Of a DNA stretch of 64,000 nt, positions 1,280 to 16,903 are shown piece after piece. Within the stretch, counting starts at the first letter, position 1; each line of letters begins with the position of its first letter. The translations under genes and the position numbers were made by a program. The stretch lies in the sequence record OR620964.1. One strand, 5' to 3'. Below the pieces are notes generated by a model. That model ran no database searches and was not told the DNA's origin. It was given only the letters and a program-made list of their open reading frames with translations.

Positions 1280-2047
1280 ATGAACGTAGATAAAACAATG
1301 CCTTCAGGCAAGTGGGAATTTGATGAACCAGTAGCTGCCGTATTCGATAACATGCTGGCCAACTCGATTCCATCGTATGACCGTATGCGTGACCTGACGT
1401 TTCGCTTGGGTAAACGTTTCGTAACACCTGGTTCAACTATTGTTGATCTTGGTGCATCACTAGGCCGTGCTATTGAACCGTTCTGTGAGTATTTCGGTCC
1501 GTACATGTATATTCATGCGGCAGATAGACCTGAGCCAGACCGAGAGATAGGCAATCATTACAGCCTGTATGAAACAGCACCTGCAATGCGTGAGCGTCTT
1601 GCGAAGAATGACGTGTTGAATGCGGCAGATGCAAAACTTGAATCCGAATCTCTTGTGGACGTTGATACGTTTCGTTTTAGTGAGCAGGTTGAATGCTCAC
1701 TGATCCTGTCCGTGCTAACACTACAGTTTACGCCTATCGAACATCGCCAACATATTCTGGAAAAGGTCTATGACTCTCTCCAGACAGGTGGTGCATTCAT
1801 TCTTGTTGAAAAGGTTCTTGGCGACGATAACTATCTGGACAAGCTGTTGGTAGATACTTACTATCAGATGAAAGGTGGTAACGGGTACTCGCAAGAATCC
1901 ATTGCTACCAAGCGTAAGTCGCTAGAAGGTGTTCTGGTTCCTGTTAAGGCAGCGTGGAATGAAGAACTATTACGCAAGGCAGGATTTAGCCGCGTTGAAT
2001 GCTTCTACCGAGATCTTAACTTCGCTGGATGGATCGCGATCAAGTAA
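1280..2047 (+). CDS. cmoA: carboxy-S-adenosyl-L-methionine (Cx-SAM) synthase, CmoA family
   Basis: WEFDEPVAAVFDNMLANSIPSY, IVDLGASLG, LTLQF, GGAFILVEK, NGYSQESIATKRKSLEGVL and AGFSRVE..LNFAGWIAIK align motif by motif with E. coli CmoA ([52 protein letters not shown]), including the Arg of the KR motif. Confidence 0.93.
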   Translation: MNVDKTMPSGKWEFDEPVAAVFDNMLANSIPSYDRMRDLTFRLGKRFVTPGSTIVDLGASLGRAIEPFCEYFGPYMYIHAADRPEPDREIGNHYSLYETAPAMRERLAKNDVLNAADAKLESESLVDVDTFRFSEQVECSLILSVLTLQFTPIEHRQHILEKVYDSLQTGGAFILVEKVLGDDNYLDKLLVDTYYQMKGGNGYSQESIATKRKSLEGVLVPVKAAWNEELLRKAGFSRVECFYRDLNFAGWIAIK

Positions 2048-2099: not shown

Positions 2100-2954
2100 G
2101 TGTCTAAGGCACTGGCGATTTCTAAAGTAATCAGACGCACATTGGTGAGCACGTTTAAGAACGCGAAAACAGAACGTCCGTTCGTGTTCCTGTCCAGCGG
2201 CGCTGATAGTAACTGTCTTTTGTTCGCTGCGCTTGAGGCAGGCAAGCAACCAGTTACACTATCATTTCATATGGAAGGTACTATTAGTCGTGACTTCCGT
2301 CAGGCGCAAGCAACTGCCAAACTGTTTAACGTACCGTTCATTGAAGTTGTATTACCTACCAACGTCGAGACACTCAAGAAAGAGTGCATACTATTAGCCA
2401 AGAAATACGGATGTCGTAGTAAGTCTGACTTCGAATGTGTCTGGCCTATGTACCACGCGTTCCGTGCTGTTGCGAAATATGCAAAGAAACACAAGATTGC
2501 TTCACCTACAATCTACACAGGTCATGCGGCTGATATATACTACGTTCTTTCCAAGAAAGGTAACATGCATTATAAAGATCGCCCAGACGATTATCGCAAT
2601 GAGCGCTTTGTAGATCCTAAACTATCACAGAGACACATACTGCCTTCGATTGCTTCTGACCTTGAAATTTCTAATGAAATACCATGGGTCGATAAGAAAA
2701 TCTTGAAATCATTCCAAGGTGCTTCTATCGCTGACGTCAATAAGCCTCGTCAGAAAGAGCCGTCACGTCTAGCCTTTGATAGTTATTTCTCCCAAACGAA
2801 AGTCTATCAACATACGAATTTCCAACTCGGTGATAGCGGCATTTCGAAACATTTTGAAGTATTGTTGTCAGATCCTGAATGGAATCCCGACAACAAGTTT
2901 CGTGCTGTCATCGGTGTGTACAACGAACTCTGCCGAAGACTCGGAGTGGCGTAA
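2100..2954 (+). CDS. asparagine-synthetase-like (N-type ATP pyrophosphatase) amide ligase lacking the glutaminase domain; CmoY-like candidate
   Basis: PP-loop VFLSSGADS, D...A...A..F.VP.IEV, and IYTGHAADIYY (cf. TGxGADE); 284 aa, synthetase domain only; GTG start at 2100 behind AAGGAG (the track start at 1929 overlaps cmoA). Confidence 0.82.
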   Translation: MSKALAISKVIRRTLVSTFKNAKTERPFVFLSSGADSNCLLFAALEAGKQPVTLSFHMEGTISRDFRQAQATAKLFNVPFIEVVLPTNVETLKKECILLAKKYGCRSKSDFECVWPMYHAFRAVAKYAKKHKIASPTIYTGHAADIYYVLSKKGNMHYKDRPDDYRNERFVDPKLSQRHILPSIASDLEISNEIPWVDKKILKSFQGASIADVNKPRQKEPSRLAFDSYFSQTKVYQHTNFQLGDSGISKHFEVLLSDPEWNPDNKFRAVIGVYNELCRRLGVA

Positions 2955-3526
2955 TGATTCGCGTATTTGATTCCGGCGCAGGAGGAGCATACGTATCGGA
3001 GTTGCTTACTGCGCACGGAGTACATAACAAACTAAGCATGTTCCCTAACATGTTCCCGTTTGGTACTAAGACAGCCGACCAGTTACTTAGCTTATTTCAT
3101 GATTATCGGAATAGTGTTACTGGTACTGTTTTCTGTGCTTGTAACACTATGAGTCTTGTGCTTAACTCCAATGGGTACGACTTTACCTCATGTGATGTTA
3201 TTCCTACATTTCCTAATCTGTCTCCTGATGCGCCAGTTTGCTACGGCACAAAGAATACAGTTTGTCTGGCTCAGATACTGTCACCTAACCTTAGAGTTCG
3301 TGCCGTGCCTAATCTTGTTTCTATGGCAGAAGATGTATATCAAGGTAGGGCTGATAGGAAAACAGCGCTGGCATTATGGGAACAAGAAGTTAGAGAAACA
3401 ATTCAACTAGGATCTACACACTTGTCATGGCTAGCCCATACTTTAGGTGTAGCTGGTGATCATGTTGAGCCGGACTATATGCGCTTATACGTAGAGCATC
3501 TGTCTGACGAAACAATAGGCATATAG
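2954..3526 (+). CDS. glutamate racemase (MurI)-like protein, second catalytic Cys replaced by Ser
   Basis: IRVFDSGAGG, PFGTKT, FCACNTMS and QLGSTHL (canonical LGCTH); ATG overlaps the ligase stop (TAATG); 190 aa. Confidence 0.85.
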   Translation: MIRVFDSGAGGAYVSELLTAHGVHNKLSMFPNMFPFGTKTADQLLSLFHDYRNSVTGTVFCACNTMSLVLNSNGYDFTSCDVIPTFPNLSPDAPVCYGTKNTVCLAQILSPNLRVRAVPNLVSMAEDVYQGRADRKTALALWEQEVRETIQLGSTHLSWLAHTLGVAGDHVEPDYMRLYVEHLSDETIGI

Positions 3527-3541
3527 CTTCTGGATATAATA

Positions 3542-4177
3542 ATGAAAAAGATTATTAATGTTTTCGATTCTGTTCTAGGTGCGAACTATGTATGTGGTCT
3601 ATTATGTGACGCTGGCTATGATGCGCGTCCGTATACACCACGACGTCAATACGTATCTCGCACGAACTCCGGCCCGGCGTTAACTATTGGCACACGAAGT
3701 GTTGAAGAGGTTAGCGACGAAATAAGCGAGGCGCTTGTTGCGATTCGTGGTAACTGGCTAATCAGTAGTACATCTGCCAGTCTTGTTGCACAGGATATGC
3801 TTGACCTGAAAGGGCTGTCTGAGAATATTGTATATGCAATTCCTGAACTTGATGGTAACCTACCTATATTGGGATCTGCCTTGACCGTCGATAGGGCTAG
3901 ACGCATACAGCGATTGCAATCAATCCATCGACGAGGCAAAAGCTCAAGAGCAGCACCGCTAGTCGATGCTTCGGATTTGTTGGCGCAATTTGAAAACTTA
4001 GCGTACTACGAAGATGAGCCTCAGGCATTCCGTCCTGAATTCGATGCGCTTGTTGGCGATAAGAAGTTTCAGTTAGGTAGTTCTAACCTTGCTCACTATG
4101 CCAAGCTGTGTAAAATTACAAAGCACACAGTTATTGATTATGTAGGTCTGGTGGCACGTCACTTGGAGACAAGATGA
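3542..4177 (+). CDS. degenerate glutamate-racemase-fold paralogue, both catalytic Cys absent
   Basis: INVFDSVLGA, IGTRSVEEV, ISSTSAS (for ACNTAS), QLGSSNL (for LGCTHY), VIDYVGLVARH. Confidence 0.7.
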   Translation: MKKIINVFDSVLGANYVCGLLCDAGYDARPYTPRRQYVSRTNSGPALTIGTRSVEEVSDEISEALVAIRGNWLISSTSASLVAQDMLDLKGLSENIVYAIPELDGNLPILGSALTVDRARRIQRLQSIHRRGKSSRAAPLVDASDLLAQFENLAYYEDEPQAFRPEFDALVGDKKFQLGSSNLAHYAKLCKITKHTVIDYVGLVARHLETR

Positions 4178-4434
4178 TTAATACCTTCACTCTAAAGAAG
4201 ACTCCTACCATTCAGGCATGCCAATGGAATGGCAGTAACATAAAAGAAATGGATACTTTCCTAAATGGATCTGGTTACTGTAAAGGACAGTATGTAGAGG
4301 TTGGTGCTGTTGTTAACGGCCAGCCTACTTTACGTAATGCCAGAGTAGGAAGTTATGTAATCAAGGATGCCCTTGGTAACTATTCTGTGCTTTATGCCGA
4401 AGAACTATTTGAACAGTATGTTCTGTCTGACTAG
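4174..4434 (+). CDS. conserved small phage protein (K-p..I.A.QW.G.N type)
   Basis: KKTPTIQACQWNGSNIKEM...VGSYVIKD pattern typical of a widespread phage family; ATGA overlap with the upstream gene. Confidence 0.7.
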   Translation: MINTFTLKKTPTIQACQWNGSNIKEMDTFLNGSGYCKGQYVEVGAVVNGQPTLRNARVGSYVIKDALGNYSVLYAEELFEQYVLSD

Positions 4435-4442
4435 GAACTCAA

Positions 4443-4904
4443 ATGAATCCGTTTGCAATACTCAAGCAGCAGGTAAAAAAGGCGCTTACGCTTGAATCAA
4501 CACTCGAACCCGAACAGCGCGCCATGTTCGACTGGCAGTACCTTGTTAATGTAAGCGGCCGATATTACAAGGTGGGTAAGACAGGAGCAAATACCTGTTA
4601 CTTTAAAACGCCTGATATGGATGAAGAGAAAGCTGTTTATCCAAATGAACTCGTAGATATAATCGAGTCATGGGGTAAAAGTAAATACGTATCTTTTTCT
4701 ATCTGCCATAAGAACTTTGATAATGTACTGGTAGATAATATCAAGGAAGAAGAACGAGCGCTCAAGTCCAAGCCTAAGAAGTTCAGAAAGGGTATCTTTA
4801 TCTGTGGGTACACACCTAAAGGTAAACGAGTTAAACTATGGCGACTGCGTGAAGGTCTAGCAGGATCTCAGTGGGTAGCCGTTGAACGGGAGTCCAAGCC
4901 GTGA
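4443..4904 (+). CDS. hypothetical protein
   Basis: 153-aa ORF with AGGA RBS. Confidence 0.75.
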   Translation: MNPFAILKQQVKKALTLESTLEPEQRAMFDWQYLVNVSGRYYKVGKTGANTCYFKTPDMDEEKAVYPNELVDIIESWGKSKYVSFSICHKNFDNVLVDNIKEEERALKSKPKKFRKGIFICGYTPKGKRVKLWRLREGLAGSQWVAVERESKP

Positions 4905-8089: not shown

Positions 8090-8498
8090 CAAACTAAAAG
8101 AGCTGTGGGAGAAACGACATGAACTCGCGGCGCAGTTAGCAGAACTGAATGGCTGGACTGTGCAAGATGGTTGGTCCTACGCCGAGTGTAGTGATGTACC
8201 TGCATGGTTCGATGCGCGTGGACAACAGGTACATACGGTTGATGGGTATATGTACCTGTTGTTTGGTACAAAGTTCTGTATTGATACGATGGATCAATAC
8301 AACATGACGGTTGACCGATCTGATACTGGACTTAGACGTGTATCCTTTTCCGTGTTGCTCGATCCCGTAGAAGAAGCAGTTACCTTTGAGGGAGTAGCGC
8401 ACGGAATACAAGAAGCGCTTGTCTTATCTATAATAAATTTCTATGCGTATACAAAGCGCACACAAGAGGTAAACAATGGAACTACCATTATCAATTGA
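8079..8498 (+). CDS. hypothetical protein
   Basis: ORF in the run; ATG 8079 preferred over 8061; weak resemblance of AAQLAELNGW..WFD to small phage sandwich domains. Confidence 0.7.
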   Translation: MLNDKLKELWEKRHELAAQLAELNGWTVQDGWSYAECSDVPAWFDARGQQVHTVDGYMYLLFGTKFCIDTMDQYNMTVDRSDTGLRRVSFSVLLDPVEEAVTFEGVAHGIQEALVLSIINFYAYTKRTQEVNNGTTIIN

Positions 8499-8979
8499 AA
8501 AATGCGTCGCACTTGTTGCTCAGTGCTTTACGCTTGCTACAAGTTCTAAATCAAAACGACGAGCCTGTGGAGCACTGCTTGTTTGTGTACGTGAAGACGG
8601 TGTGCCCGTTGTTATCAGCTCTGGCATTAATGGTACTGCCCCTGGTGCAGATAATGCTTGTGAGCCACCTTGTCTGACATATACATTTGGTCATGTTGTT
8701 CACGCAGAGCCAAATTGTCTAGCTAACTTTGATTCTGATTTTGTGTTCACTGATAGACATATTCTGTTTGTATCGGATAGCCCGTGCCCACACTGCTTCA
8801 AGATAATTGCAGAGCGGGGTATTAAGCACGTTGTGTTCGGCAGGGGTTATCGTATTCAAGAGCATCTAACCGATGAGGTTCTGGCACTTCACGGTATGAC
8901 TCTGACTCAGGTAGATATGCAGAACGTGATTCAATATCTGTCTAACACTGTTACCAGAATTGAACAGGTGATTTGCTAA
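8476..8979 (+). CDS. dCMP deaminase
   Basis: GINGTAPG, zinc motifs HAEPNC and SPCPHC, GIKHVVF. Confidence 0.92.
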   Translation: MELPLSIEKCVALVAQCFTLATSSKSKRRACGALLVCVREDGVPVVISSGINGTAPGADNACEPPCLTYTFGHVVHAEPNCLANFDSDFVFTDRHILFVSDSPCPHCFKIIAERGIKHVVFGRGYRIQEHLTDEVLALHGMTLTQVDMQNVIQYLSNTVTRIEQVIC

Positions 8980-10850: not shown

Positions 10851-11948
10851 ATGTCTCATATTTTTGATTTACGTAATGACGACCACTTCTTTCAATACTC
10901 ACTGGACAATGTAGACTGTCAGTATATGGATCTGGTTAATGCTATTCTGACCGAAGGCACAAAAGAAGCTGATCCGAAACGCAGTGAAGATACTTGGACG
11001 ATGTTACCATCTATCTCTATGACGTTGCGCAATACAGCCATGGCCTTTCCAGTCCTACTATCTAAGCGTACCCGTTACGTGCCAGCTATTGATGAGACGT
11101 GCTGGTTCATGCGCGGTGAGACAAACATCGAGACTCTTAACTCTCGCATATGGGATGAATGGGCAGACGAGTCAGGTGATTGCGGTCCTATCTATGGTTA
11201 CATGTGGCGCCACTGGCCAGATGTAAAAGCATTCCAAGACTTCACTAAGCCATCTGCTGTTTGTCCGTCGGCCGATGCTATCCGTATTCGCAACGAGATT
11301 ATTCGTATGCGCGCCGCTGGATACAAAGAGACTCAGTTGGCTGATGGGCGAATCCTATTTGAAGGTGAAATTGATCAGTTGTTAAATGCACTGAATGCTT
11401 GTGTTGCGCATGACCGTTCTCGTCGTATTAAAGTTGAAGCATGGAATCCTGGGTACATCCATATGCAGGGCCTTCCTCCGTGTCACACTGGTTTTGAATT
11501 CAACGTAACCAAAACTACTGACTATGAGCGTAAGGCAATGGAAGCTATGGGCCATACTGCTTACGAGGATTCGTTACATCTTACTGCCACAATGAGGAGT
11601 CAAGATGTGGCACTTGGAAGAAGTTTTAACATTATTGGCTATACTACGATGCTCCACCTGTTCGCCAAGTATAGCAAGCTAAATATCGGTAGCTTTACGT
11701 TGAACACTTCTAACACGCATGTTTATGACCATCACCGTGAAGGTCTTGAGACACAGCGTAAGCAGTTCCAAGAAATTTTGGACGTTGTGCGGTCTACTGG
11801 TAAGCCTATGCAGTATCCTGTCCTGCATGTTCACGATGATATCATGAAGATGGAGCCAAAAGAAATGCTGGATAGCATTACCAAAGATCATTTTCTTGTT
11901 GAAGGCTATCTGTCTATGCCTGAGATCAAATTCCGCGTCACCAAATAG
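10851..11948 (+). CDS. thyA: thymidylate synthase (ThyA type) with insertions
   Basis: IWDEWAD, GPIYGYMWRHWP, DQL, SRRI...WNP, catalytic LPPCH, RSQD..LG..FNI, HVYDHH. Confidence 0.95.
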   Translation: MSHIFDLRNDDHFFQYSLDNVDCQYMDLVNAILTEGTKEADPKRSEDTWTMLPSISMTLRNTAMAFPVLLSKRTRYVPAIDETCWFMRGETNIETLNSRIWDEWADESGDCGPIYGYMWRHWPDVKAFQDFTKPSAVCPSADAIRIRNEIIRMRAAGYKETQLADGRILFEGEIDQLLNALNACVAHDRSRRIKVEAWNPGYIHMQGLPPCHTGFEFNVTKTTDYERKAMEAMGHTAYEDSLHLTATMRSQDVALGRSFNIIGYTTMLHLFAKYSKLNIGSFTLNTSNTHVYDHHREGLETQRKQFQEILDVVRSTGKPMQYPVLHVHDDIMKMEPKEMLDSITKDHFLVEGYLSMPEIKFRVTK

Positions 11949-14824: not shown

Positions 14825-16903
14825 ATGGTAATCAAACCACCTACAATGAAAGAGATCAACGCGCTGGAGAAACCTTGGCGCGGTATGAGCTTCTTTGCTG
14901 GATGCGGCGGCTCCAGTACAGGTCACAAGATGAGTGGCGTTAATATTCTGATTGCAAATGAGTTCGTAGACTCGGCGCGGTTATCATATGAAGCAAACCA
15001 TCCGACGACTAAAATGCTGCCGCAGGATATTCGCCGCTTAGACCCAGCTAAGATTTTGAAGTATCTGGGCCTTAAGAAAGGTGAATTGGATTTGCTTGAT
15101 GGTAGTCCTCCTTGCTTCACAGAAGAGACACTCATTCAGACACGTAGTGGCATGAAGTACATCAACCAAATAGTAGTTGATGACTTTGTTCTTACGCACA
15201 AGCAGCGCTATCGCCGTGTCGTTGAGCCTATGCGTCGCCAGTACACAGGACTAATGCATAAGATTGTTAGTTCTGTAAGTGAGAACAATGCTACACCTGA
15301 ACATCCGTACTATATTCGTCGTATGGAAAATGATGTGCTGTCTGAGCCACAGTGGGTAGATGCAAGAGACGTTCGTGTTGGCGATAAGGTAGCTATTCCT
15401 ACTAGCACACACGCGACTGCTGATCTATCTGAGTGCTCTCAACAGATTCGCCAGTGGGCACAGCATGATGAGTTCTGGTGGTTAGTAGGTCAGTGGGTAG
15501 CTAACGGTAGTATGTCTCGTTGTGGAACACACCGAGCTATTCGTTTTCGTACACACAGCTCCCGTGGTAATCAATTGCTTGAGCAGGCGCTCGACCTGCT
15601 GGAGCTAACATCTATTCAGACTGCGTACTGTGGCGGTAAGTATATAGAGCGCTTTGTTATGAATGAAGAACTGGCAACATTCTTCAAGCTGTTCCTAACA
15701 GATAGTGCTCAAGCCCGACAGATACCAGGCTTTGTTTTAGACTTACCTGACAGGTCACAGCGGCAATTTGTATTCGGCTATCAGTCTCGCTGCTATGAGT
15801 CTACTTTTGGTAAGGCGCTTGTCGTACAAACACGCAGTCTTCCTTTCATGACTGCTATGCGTCACCTAGTTGCTTCTGCGTTCAAGTGCCCGCTGTTTAG
15901 TTTCAATACGCAAGCAGCACCAGAAGAACTTCCTGTTAGTAACTTCACTTATCTACCTGAATCCGAGTGCGGCCAGTGGGTAAACCACCAAGCAGTATTC
16001 TTTATTCAGGAAGAAGATCGTGGTTTTATTCGCGATGCTGATGACTTACTTTGGGTTGATGTGCTGGCCAATACGCAATATGAATCTAGTGTGCAGGTAT
16101 ATAACTTTAGTGTATCACAGGATGAGACGTATGTTGCGACGAATACAGTCGTGCACAACTGTAAGGGGTTCTCTTCTGCTGGCGTTAAAGAGGAAGGCTG
16201 GGGACGGGAAGTAAAATATAGCGAGGATAAAGTCCAACACGTCGATGACCTGTTTGATGAGTTCTGCCGTATGCTTAGTGGTACAATGCCTAAAGTATTT
16301 ACGGCAGAGAATGTAAGTGGTCTGGTTAAAGGTGTGTCTCGTGGATTCTTCATTGAGATAATGAAAGAGTTTGATCGTATCGGATATAAAGTTCGAGCAC
16401 CTTTGATGAATGCTGCTTGGCTTGGCGTACCACAATCGAGAGAGCGTATTCTCTTTATGGGTGTGCGTAAGGATATACCGTTTGATGTGCCTGATGTTGA
16501 GGTTCAAGATACGATAGCCATTCTTGCAGATGCCTTGCCTCACATTGCTGCGTTTAAGGGAATCAGGAATGATATGATTACCTACATTCCTGCAATTAAC
16601 AGTCCGTGCAAGACAATAACAGCAACGGATAGTACGGCATATGAAACAGCACGTTTCAGTACCGCGGGCTTTATCGAAACTATGGAAGGCAAGCGCCGCA
16701 AGCTAACCATTGAAGAACTTAAAGTTATTTCTGGTATGCCTTCTGACTATAAGTTAGTTGGTACTTTCGAGCAACAATGGGAACGACTTGGTCGTGTCTG
16801 TGTTCCGCAGATGACACACGCTGCGTCTAAGGCACTTATCGAGCATGTGTTGATTCCTTATGCGAAGAAGCGTAAGAAGAAAGTTGGGGATATCTTCCGA
16901 TGA
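14825..16903 (+). CDS. C5-cytosine DNA methyltransferase-family enzyme with intein; predicted cytosine carboxymethyltransferase (CmoX-like)
   Basis: Motif I FFAGCGG, ANEF, motif IV GSPP|C (split by the intein), VI AENV, VIII PQSRER, IX R.LTIEELKVISGMP; motif X reads LGRVCVP instead of GNSV/GNAV (Arg codon 16793-16795). Confidence 0.88.
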   Translation: MVIKPPTMKEINALEKPWRGMSFFAGCGGSSTGHKMSGVNILIANEFVDSARLSYEANHPTTKMLPQDIRRLDPAKILKYLGLKKGELDLLDGSPPCFTEETLIQTRSGMKYINQIVVDDFVLTHKQRYRRVVEPMRRQYTGLMHKIVSSVSENNATPEHPYYIRRMENDVLSEPQWVDARDVRVGDKVAIPTSTHATADLSECSQQIRQWAQHDEFWWLVGQWVANGSMSRCGTHRAIRFRTHSSRGNQLLEQALDLLELTSIQTAYCGGKYIERFVMNEELATFFKLFLTDSAQARQIPGFVLDLPDRSQRQFVFGYQSRCYESTFGKALVVQTRSLPFMTAMRHLVASAFKCPLFSFNTQAAPEELPVSNFTYLPESECGQWVNHQAVFFIQEEDRGFIRDADDLLWVDVLANTQYESSVQVYNFSVSQDETYVATNTVVHNCKGFSSAGVKEEGWGREVKYSEDKVQHVDDLFDEFCRMLSGTMPKVFTAENVSGLVKGVSRGFFIEIMKEFDRIGYKVRAPLMNAAWLGVPQSRERILFMGVRKDIPFDVPDVEVQDTIAILADALPHIAAFKGIRNDMITYIPAINSPCKTITATDSTAYETARFSTAGFIETMEGKRRKLTIEELKVISGMPSDYKLVGTFEQQWERLGRVCVPQMTHAASKALIEHVLIPYAKKRKKKVGDIFR
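15113..16159 (+). mobile_element. intein (349 aa) with degenerate LAGLIDADG homing-endonuclease region
   Basis: Starts CFTEETLIQTRSG, block B TPEHPYY, block F VYNFSV, ends VVHN followed by +1 Cys; middle WWLVGQWVANGS and QFVFGYQSRC resemble eroded LAGLIDADG blocks. Confidence 0.93.

Follow-up and report, generated by a model that had tools for sequence, protein, structure and literature searches.

The window analysed here is the whole of the last 64 kb of the genome of Yersinia phage fHe-Yen9-02 (OR620964.1). The host of this jumbo phage is Yersinia enterocolitica O:9, and the 249-kb phage genome is syntenic with those of the Erwinia and Dickeya jumbo phages Y3, Alexandra, pEa_SNUABM_x, Yoloswag and AD1. 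The subject is a pair of adjacent genes near the start of the window, fHeYen902_254 and fHeYen902_255 (gp254 and gp255), both of which carry the GenBank label 'hypothetical protein'. The first encodes a short protein of the glutamate racemase (MurI) lineage and directly follows a gene for a putative amide ligase of the 5-carboxymethylcytosine (5cxmC) pathway of DNA modification; the second encodes a paralogue of the first. The genes on which the argument turns are as follows.

1280..2047, + strand: gp252, homologue of CmoA, the synthase of carboxy-S-adenosylmethionine (carboxy-SAM)
2100..2954, + strand: gp253, CmoY-type PP-loop amide ligase (annotated start 1959)
2954..3526, + strand: gp254, mini-MurI of 190 amino acids (aa) with the glutamate-racemase fold, Cys63/Ser154
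3542..4177, + strand: gp255, paralogue of gp254 with a Ser/Ser pair, 211 aa, part of the Y3/Alexandra-like jumbo-phage backbone
14069..14815, + strand: gp274, ParB-like (GenBank annotation), directly upstream of CmoX
14825..16903, + strand: gp275, CmoX homologue of the DNA cytosine-C5 carboxymethyltransferase type, 692 aa, with an intein at about 15113-16159

The stop codon of the ligase gene (TAA, 2952-2954) and the ATG of gp254 overlap by one base (TAATG, 2952-2956), with a GGAG 8 nucleotides (nt) upstream. The gp254 protein carries the motifs FDSG (residues 5-8), ACNT (62-65) and GSTH (153-156), with codon 154 read as TCT at 3413-3415. The corresponding motifs of gp255 are FDS (8-10), SSTSAS (75-80) and GSSN (179-182), and neither catalytic position is occupied by cysteine. 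A sequence-only reading of this DNA had described the coupling, all of these motifs, the serine codon and the short length of both proteins, and each of these statements is correct. Its view of the two genes as MurI-fold paralogues, the first with a nearly complete MurI active site built around a Cys/Ser pair, is borne out by profile searches, fold comparison and hhalign.

The MurI ancestry of gp254 and its predicted two-domain α/β Asp/Glu-racemase fold can be stated with confidence because three independent lines of evidence agree. A family profile (A1), made from gp254 and 12 homologues, matches ten different glutamate racemases in the PDB, the best being E. coli MurI (2jfn, E=2.7e-7) with the three motifs in register. 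The NCBIfam model TIGR00067 matches residues 2-164 with E=1.7e-6. The AlphaFold model of gp254 (predicted local distance difference test, pLDDT, 95.4; predicted template-modelling score 0.90) retrieves only glutamate racemases at ranks 1-38 of a Foldseek search of the PDB (template-modelling score, TM, 0.54-0.68), and aspartate and allantoin racemases come next. MurI is reached from gp254 by profiles and by fold only; single-sequence searches with gp254 and gp255 gave nothing but noise in the PDB (antibody chains, a coelenterazine-binding protein, TetR) and no match in Pfam or PHROG.

The active site is almost entirely conserved. In Helicobacter pylori MurI, the catalytic residues are D7, S8, C70 and T72 on the D-glutamate (D-Glu) side and E150, C181, T182 and H183 on the L-Glu side (PMC6927343). 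The counterparts in gp254 are D6, S7, C63, T65, E126, S154, T155 and H156, all invariant in the 13 sequences of the family, in which P35, G37 and N64 are invariant as well. Seven of the eight catalytic residues of MurI are kept in this way, among them every auxiliary residue (D6, S7 and T65; E126, T155 and H156), and the eighth, the L-side cysteine, is Ser154. The sequence-only reading had remarked that TCT is a single base from the cysteine codon TGT. This proximity is irrelevant: the codon was checked in the homologues, and all 13 sequences have serine, encoded by TCT, TCA or AGC and hence by both serine codon families, which rules out a sequencing error and makes Ser154 a fixed character held across a long divergence. 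Nor is either gene a pseudogene, since the frames are intact and pN is far below pS. The ratio of nonsynonymous to synonymous substitution rates (dN/dS) is 0.09 for gp254-like genes and 0.07-0.15 for gp255-like genes where dS is unsaturated, indicating purifying selection in both, with dS saturated in most pairs and few values usable. The word 'degenerate', applied earlier to both genes, suits the catalytic residues of gp255 alone; neither gene is decaying.

Two further properties of the gp254 family bear on its function. The proteins are acidic (isoelectric point, pI, 4.9-6.4; net charge -2 to -13) and lack a basic patch, as expected of an enzyme acting on small molecules. The N-terminal segment of E. 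coli MurI is missing, the alignment beginning at residue 23 of 2jfn.

The gp255 protein is a true paralogue of gp254: BLASTP aligns the two over their full length (E=0.002) and hhalign aligns the two families over 183 columns with a probability of 98.9% (E=1.5e-17). The model of gp255 itself is too poor for a search (pLDDT 44.8), and BFVD models of its family relatives were used instead. A search of BFVD with the gp254 model gave only two significant matches, both of them gp255-family proteins, from pEa_SNUABM_5 (TM 0.80) and Y3 (TM 0.69), which indirectly suggests that gp255 shares the Asp/Glu-racemase fold. The gp255 profile does not reach MurI directly and gp255 has no Pfam or NCBIfam (TIGR00067) match. 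At the catalytic positions of the family only D9, S76 (the first cysteine position), S80 and S180 (the second) survive, so that Asp alone is kept of the auxiliary residues; Ser76 and Ser180 are both invariant in the eight sequences. The invariant positions of this family are D9, R69, S76, S80, D88, G91, S93, D145, S180 and Y200. The gp255 proteins are neutral to basic in pI and contain a basic segment at about residues 110-135, not found in gp254. At a guess, this insert might serve a non-catalytic role, perhaps in binding DNA or the ligase or as a scaffold.

The setting that the sequence-only reading had proposed for the two genes, a 5cxmC pathway, is supported, as homologues of all its enzymes (CmoA, CmoX and the CmoY-like ligase) are present in the window. 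The gp252 protein matches TIGR00740 (CmoA) with E=3e-42, under the equivalog cutoff, and shares 29% identity with the CmoA of Synechococcus phage S-B05 and 68-94% with that of Y3/Alexandra-like jumbo phages. The gp253 ligase shares 30% identity (E=3e-24) with its counterpart in the CmoA-ligase-CmoX cluster of S-B05, and this cluster is related to the S-B43 system studied in PMC12783734. It also matches phrog_26038 and a QueC-like PP-loop, and no relative was found in the PDB by sequence. Its annotated start at 1959, which overlaps CmoA by 89 nt, is probably a misannotation and GTG 2100 the true start, because homologues of 283-289 aa align from residue 48 of the protein as annotated and this GTG lies 7 nt behind AAGGAG. 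The third enzyme, CmoX (gp275), lies about 11 kb downstream of the ligase array. Its best PDB match is SpCmoX (8yf3, E=7e-52, as against 3e-16 for ordinary C5 methylases), and Pfam recognises DNA_methylase together with Intein_splicing/Hint_2. An intein of about 349 aa, in frame, interrupts the protein precisely at the catalytic Pro-Pro-Cys motif, and the two extein pieces align separately to residues 22-98 and 98-369 of S-B05 CmoX. With the catalytic Cys immediately following the intein, protein splicing would be needed before an active carboxymethyltransferase could form. An Arg aligned to R350 of the S-B05 homologue, the binder of the carboxy-SAM carboxyl group, is kept, the numbering assuming that S-B05 equals S-B43, both proteins having 372 aa. 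The ParB-like gp274 has no Pfam match and is 40% identical to a gene lying between mini-MurI and CmoX in one of the metagenomic loci described below (L024); ParBc proteins are associated with CmoX at many loci (PMC12783734).

Relatives of gp254 are rare, and the family is a tiny clade of MurI-like proteins, 190 aa long, in which the Cys/Ser pair is fixed. Only 13 cluster-level relatives were found in 5.8 billion proteins, and a set of 1.84 billion representatives yielded only three clusters at 50% identity with E<1e-30. A search of 50,697 phage genomes found gp254 in this record alone, and scans of IMG/VR with the gp254 family and with its short Cys/Cys relatives gave no match. Two candidates were discarded: a 30% partial match from the metagenome scan (L016) proved to be unrelated and one from the genome scan (L021) is an ordinary bacterial MurI next to Ddl. 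The next-nearest relatives are a few metagenomic proteins of 182-192 aa that share the short C-terminus, three of them Cys/Cys (P0022, P0029, P0062) and one Cys/Ser (P0023); they may represent the stock from which the phage family arose.

Fifteen loci with a gp254-like gene were read (the window, L003-L010, L019, L020 and L022-L025), of which 12 are distinct and which represent at least four genome contexts. Linkage to the ligase, on which the sequence-only reading depended, was looked at across this set and holds throughout: a ligase of 283-289 aa lies directly upstream in 15 of the 15 loci, the two genes overlapping by up to 4 nt or standing up to 2 nt apart. Identity is 61-95% both among these ligases and to gp253 (77-95% in the main set). 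In the Y3-like backbone context (the window, L005-7, L019, L020 and L022), the order is CmoA, ligase, gp254-like gene, gp255-like gene, gp256 and gp257. L003/4 and L008-10 belong to another jumbo-phage context, where the ligase/mini-MurI pair is followed by tRNA-Met (L003 8852-8928; L008 4718-4803) and, in L008-10, also by an HNH endonuclease (L008 4828-5403). In L023, the ligase and mini-MurI are followed by a 3-deoxy-D-arabino-heptulosonate 7-phosphate (DAHP) synthase (879-1706; TIGR00034 cutoff passed) and then by baseplate genes, a gp257-like gene also being present after the cassette. In L024, the order is ligase, mini-MurI, ParB-like gene and CmoX-like C5 methyltransferase. The contexts of L023 and L024 tie the cassette to carboxymethylation chemistry by two further routes. 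DAHP synthase stands at the start of the shikimate pathway, which leads to prephenate. Prephenate is the co-substrate of CmoA and its availability has been flagged as an open question (PMC12783734); the L023 enzyme is possibly an auxiliary gene product that raises shikimate flux and hence the prephenate available for carboxy-SAM.

Two of these loci, L019 and L020 (JAVWLC010000408.1 and JAVWLC010000354.1), come from the genome scan and are contigs of 2-3 kb binned in a 'Raoultibacter' metagenome-assembled genome. They are Y3-like jumbo-phage fragments containing ligase, gp254-like, gp255-like, gp256 and gp257 genes, and their placement in that genome is likely to be a binning artefact. In L020, with about 5x coverage, one or more interruptions seem to be present in each of the gp254-like and gp255-like frames.

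Comparison with the sister phages shows that the accessory gene varies with the ligase. Among ten jumbo-phage representatives, CmoA is 68-95% identical. Their ligases form four clades, between which identity is only 24-56%, and the accessory content differs from clade to clade.

Clade I (the window, L003, L005, L006 and others): mini-MurI
Clade II (pEa_SNUABM_5 and 36, sharing 84% identity): accessory gene absent
Clade III (Y3 and Yoloswag, 89% identical though their CmoA is 70% identical): 2-oxoglutarate (2OG)-Fe(II) oxygenase (PF13640) after the ligase, at 7948-8586 of L002 (Y3_020) and 6447-7088 of L018 (Yoloswag gp19)
Clade IV (Alexandra and pEa_SNUABM_3, 83% identical): DgcN-like protein, with or without a pyridoxal-phosphate (PLP) alanine-racemase homologue

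In clade IV, the Alexandra ligase is very divergent (24-29% identical to the other clades) and the DUF1611/DgcN-like gene Alexandra_18 (3088-4143 of L011) lies between CmoA and the ligase. The same interval in pEa_SNUABM_3 (1034-5128 of L017, NC_061445.1) encodes three proteins: one of 420 aa for which no relatives could be detected, one that is DgcN-like, and a 311-aa homologue of PLP alanine racemase. The DgcN-like proteins match NF041892 with E=2e-82 in Alexandra and 1e-91 in pEa_SNUABM_3, both under the equivalog cutoff. The racemase homologue, also below its equivalog cutoff, matches PF01168 (E=4e-14) and PDB alanine racemases (to 6e-8) and keeps the lysine motif. DgcN is the D-glutamate N-acetyltransferase of a catabolic route for D-Glu (NCBIfam name; PMC12363236).

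The identities of CmoA and ligase are incongruent. The window and Y3 share 94% identity in CmoA and 33% in the ligase; Alexandra and pEa_SNUABM_36 share 95% in CmoA, 74% in the gp255-like protein and 24% in the ligase. This implies that units of ligase plus accessory gene have been exchanged on a conserved backbone. This pattern is most economically read as one in which the accessory genes supply or modify the amine that a given ligase clade would join to 5cxmC, the Y3/Yoloswag oxygenase being a likely tailoring enzyme for the adduct or the base. D-amino-acid chemistry is the best-supported theme, because two non-homologous racemase folds and an acyltransferase family acting on D-Glu occupy the same slot. 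The idea of a D-amino acid, put forward in the sequence-only reading from the window alone, gains independent support from the PLP alanine-racemase homologue and the DgcN-like proteins in the slot of the sister phages.

We therefore favour, with a probability of roughly 45%, the explanation that gp254 belongs to the MurI lineage and is an amino-acid racemase of minimal size, independent of cofactors, that supplies a D-amino acid, probably D-Glu, to the CmoY-type ligase. CmoA would make carboxy-SAM, and the intein-bearing CmoX would use it to add a carboxymethyl group to cytosine C5 of the phage DNA. The ligase would then adenylate the carboxylate of 5cxmC and couple it to an amine, which in the gp254 clade would most likely be D-glutamate or a very close D-amino acid. 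gp254 would interconvert L- and D-glutamate, making D-Glu from the large cellular pool of L-Glu, and the ATP-driven ligase would act as the sink, leaving phage DNA with a D-aminoacyl amide of 5cxmC. D-glutamate is the best guess for clade I because the MurI-specific residues are kept in gp254. CmoY joins glycine, an alpha-amino acid, to 5cxmC, and other ligase clusters probably use other amines (PMC12783734). E. coli MurI is described as activated by UDP-N-acetylmuramoyl-L-alanine (UDP-MurNAc-L-Ala; PMC10886550; title of 2jfn). With the host enzyme gated by a cell-wall precursor and the N-terminal extension absent from gp254, a dedicated and ungated phage enzyme is plausible, and a phage in need of D-Glu in bulk would benefit from having its own. 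Somewhat more tentatively, and at rather less than even odds, we suggest that fHe-Yen9-02 and its metagenomic relatives carry an amide of D-Glu or another D-amino acid on 5cxmC, and that the CmoA backbone serves as a docking site for swapped cassettes of ligase plus supply enzyme which diversify the adduct. The cassette partners seen are mini-MurI, the PLP racemase with a DgcN-like protein, and the 2OG oxygenase.

Several observations weigh against this explanation. The TIGR00067 score of gp254 is 27.6 bits, far below the curated cutoff of 146.65; none of the 13 family members reaches the gathering score of the Pfam Asp/Glu racemase family, and gp254 is about 70 residues shorter than a normal MurI. 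On account of the curated score, the length and the lost second cysteine, gp254 is to be called MurI-like and not MurI. The clade II ligase is 53-56% identical to that of the mini-MurI clade and yet has no accessory gene, and CmoA was not seen within 8 kb in L003/4 and L008-10; L003 covers 16.6 kb of the 218-kb contig Ga0485749_000005. In a Lactobacillus MurI, Cys-to-Ser replacements reduce the enzyme's activity by about 1000-fold (PMC6927343, citing Glavas and Tanner 1999). It is the Cys/Ser pair that poses the main difficulty. In MurI, the first Cys deprotonates D-Glu and the second L-Glu (PMC8142540), and gp254 retains the former and has lost the latter. The sequence-only reading had drawn an analogy with EcL-DER, a natural one-Cys racemase working from L to D, but gp254 has the opposite arrangement and the analogy points the other way. 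By analogy with the one-Cys racemases, the Cys/Ser pair would favour D-to-L kinetics with slow deprotonation on the L side. The equilibrium constant between free enantiomers is 1. Net flux would consequently be set by the sizes of the pools and by the ligase as sink, and could still run from the L-Glu pool to the ligase.

Another possibility is that gp254 acts after ligation, either epimerising L-Glu or another L-residue already on 5cxmC DNA or converting a D-form to the L-form. In its favour, the retained Cys63 is the base on the D face (PMC8142540), the cleft could be opened by the shorter C-terminus, and OpaE, which belongs to the Asp/Glu-racemase family, epimerises a residue within a peptide-derived product in a quasi-unidirectional manner from D to L (PMC12661438). 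We nevertheless regard this as unlikely: the acidic family offers no basic patch for DNA, and gp254 retains every residue with which MurI holds free glutamate, pointing to a free amino acid as substrate. PLP alanine racemases act on free amino acids, and it is to this type that the racemase homologue of the sister clade belongs.

An equally unlikely alternative is that gp254 is a one-base enzyme that does not racemise at all and carries out a half-reaction on a precursor resembling an amino acid, such as elimination, decarboxylation or stereospecific protonation, to make an unusual amine for the ligase. The invariance of Ser154 through changes of codon family suggests selection for serine and not mere tolerance of it, and the short homologues exist in both Cys/Cys and Cys/Ser forms. 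In related two-base superfamilies, a Cys-to-hydroxyl swap turns an epimerase into a dehydratase (PMC8142540). Against such a change of reaction, gp254 keeps the rest of the glutamate-racemase residues, neither a candidate substrate nor a partner enzyme for it was seen adjoining the gene, and the alanine-racemase and DgcN-like genes of the sister clade point to plain D-amino-acid chemistry.

The sequence-only reading had itself proposed a pair of active and pseudo-enzyme that together supply or tailor the amino acid. As an obligate heterodimer, gp254 and gp255 would fit with the common dimerisation of MurI enzymes (PMC6927343) and with their adjacency in the window and, beyond it, at six distinct loci (L005, L006, L007, L019, L020, L022). 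The distributions of the two genes make the idea improbable. Members of the gp255 family are present in 40 phage records, which without exception are Erwinia, Dickeya or Yersinia jumbo phages, and 39 of these lack gp254. Conversely, in no fewer than four distinct contexts no gp255-like neighbour accompanies the gp254-like gene: L003/4, L008-10 (in both groups none within 8 kb), L023 and L024. The identities of gp255 follow the phage backbone and not the ligase clade, and Yoloswag carries the module without a gp255-like gene. gp255 is a conserved MurI-fold pseudo-racemase of the CmoA-side phage backbone, by its residues and distribution non-catalytic as regards racemisation and independent of the type of amine.

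Slightly less probable again is a host-directed gp254, for instance a MurI-like inhibitor of DNA gyrase or a drain on cell-wall D-Glu, for although bacterial MurI inhibits gyrase independently of racemisation (PMC10886550) and Cys63 is the D-Glu-deprotonating base (PMC8142540), this would leave unexplained the strict coupling to one ligase clade at every locus, the position in L024 between ligase and ParB/CmoX, and the parallel recruitment of D-amino-acid enzymes.

Beyond gp255, the tightly packed array continues with two small genes whose synteny is kept in related phages.

4174-4434, + strand: gp256, no assigned function
4443-4904, + strand: gp257, no assigned function

Jointly, these two match phrog_36935 and phrog_23597, one or the other in each case. 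A promoter and terminator scan of the array showed no enrichment and found no + strand terminator inside it, which would be compatible with co-transcription. Between the ligase array and CmoX, a dCMP deaminase (8476-8979; record 193154-193657) and a thymidylate synthase (about 10851-11948; record 195529-196626) are annotated, placing genes of pyrimidine nucleotide metabolism close to those of cytosine modification.

Description of the 5cxmC pathway dates only from December 2025; glycine is its one known adduct, and in the authors' view further ligase clusters must employ different amines (PMC12783734). For one ligase clade, the locus described here yields a concrete prediction, a D-amino acid and probably D-Glu. 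It also provides a comparative framework of four ligase clades with their own accessory enzymes on a conserved CmoA backbone, and marks the cultured phages to be compared: fHe-Yen9-02, pEa_SNUABM_5 or 36, Y3 or Yoloswag, and Alexandra or pEa_SNUABM_3. To our knowledge, a D-amino-acid decoration of DNA would be the first such modification. If the prediction is true, DNA bearing a D-amino acid would represent a new class of nucleic-acid chemistry, with likely relevance to the evasion of restriction and other DNA-sensing defences. Both the gp254 clade and the Ser/Ser pseudo-racemase family of gp255 are of interest for the enzymology of two-base racemases.

Among known enzymes, gp254 most resembles MurI (TIGR00067; PDB 2jfn, 2jfo and 1zuw), with which it shares the two-domain fold, collinear motifs and the Asp-Ser, Cys-Asn-Thr, Glu and Thr-His residues. 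It differs in size (190 aa compared with about 250-290 aa, lacking part of the C-terminus and the E. coli N-terminal extension), in the invariant Ser that replaces the second catalytic Cys, and in being encoded by a phage beside a DNA-modification ligase and not in cell-wall synthesis. A natural exchange of Cys for a hydroxyl residue is found in the same superfamily in the one-Cys Asp/Glu racemases EcL-DER and MMP0739. In EcL-DER (Thr/Cys), which runs from L to D, one Cys has become Thr, and in MMP0739 (Cys/Thr) the opposite base is replaced (PMC8142540). EcL-DER has replaced the first, D-face Cys and kept the second; by the description in that paper, gp254 has the MMP0739 arrangement, in which the L-face base is lost. 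Unlike these enzymes, gp254 has Ser and not Thr, and it is closest to MurI and not to the Asp/Glu racemase branch. The fungal OpaE (PMC12661438) shows that the same fold can epimerise a residue built into a larger molecule, which bears only on the possibility of action on DNA; OpaE differs from gp254 in having a cysteine dyad and in belonging to the allantoin/hydantoin racemase branch. The homologues of DgcN (NF041892) and PLP alanine racemase in Alexandra-type and pEa_SNUABM_3-type phages, which use the same CmoA-ligase slot, are functionally analogous to gp254, not homologous to it, and absent from the window.

At the level of the pathway, the closest comparison is the CmoA-CmoX-CmoY system of S-B43, which produces 5-glycylcarboxymethylcytosine (PMC12783734). 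The paper, which covers 2,251 ligases, lists m/z 286.1 for 5cxmdC and 343.1 for the amide with glycine; the amide with glutamate would be expected at about 415.1. CmoX is mentioned in no other paper within the literature searched, and that paper makes no mention of a racemase, an oxygenase, Erwinia or Yersinia. Homologues of all three S-B43 proteins are found in the window, and a ParB-like gene stands next to CmoX in both cases. The S-B43 system has no racemase and its amine, glycine, is achiral, whereas fHe-Yen9-02 adds mini-MurI and an intein in CmoX, and its genes are split between two places about 11 kb apart; the sister ligase clades carry other accessory enzymes. Judged from its genes, the fHe-Yen9-02 system would work like the S-B43 pathway with a supply enzyme added.

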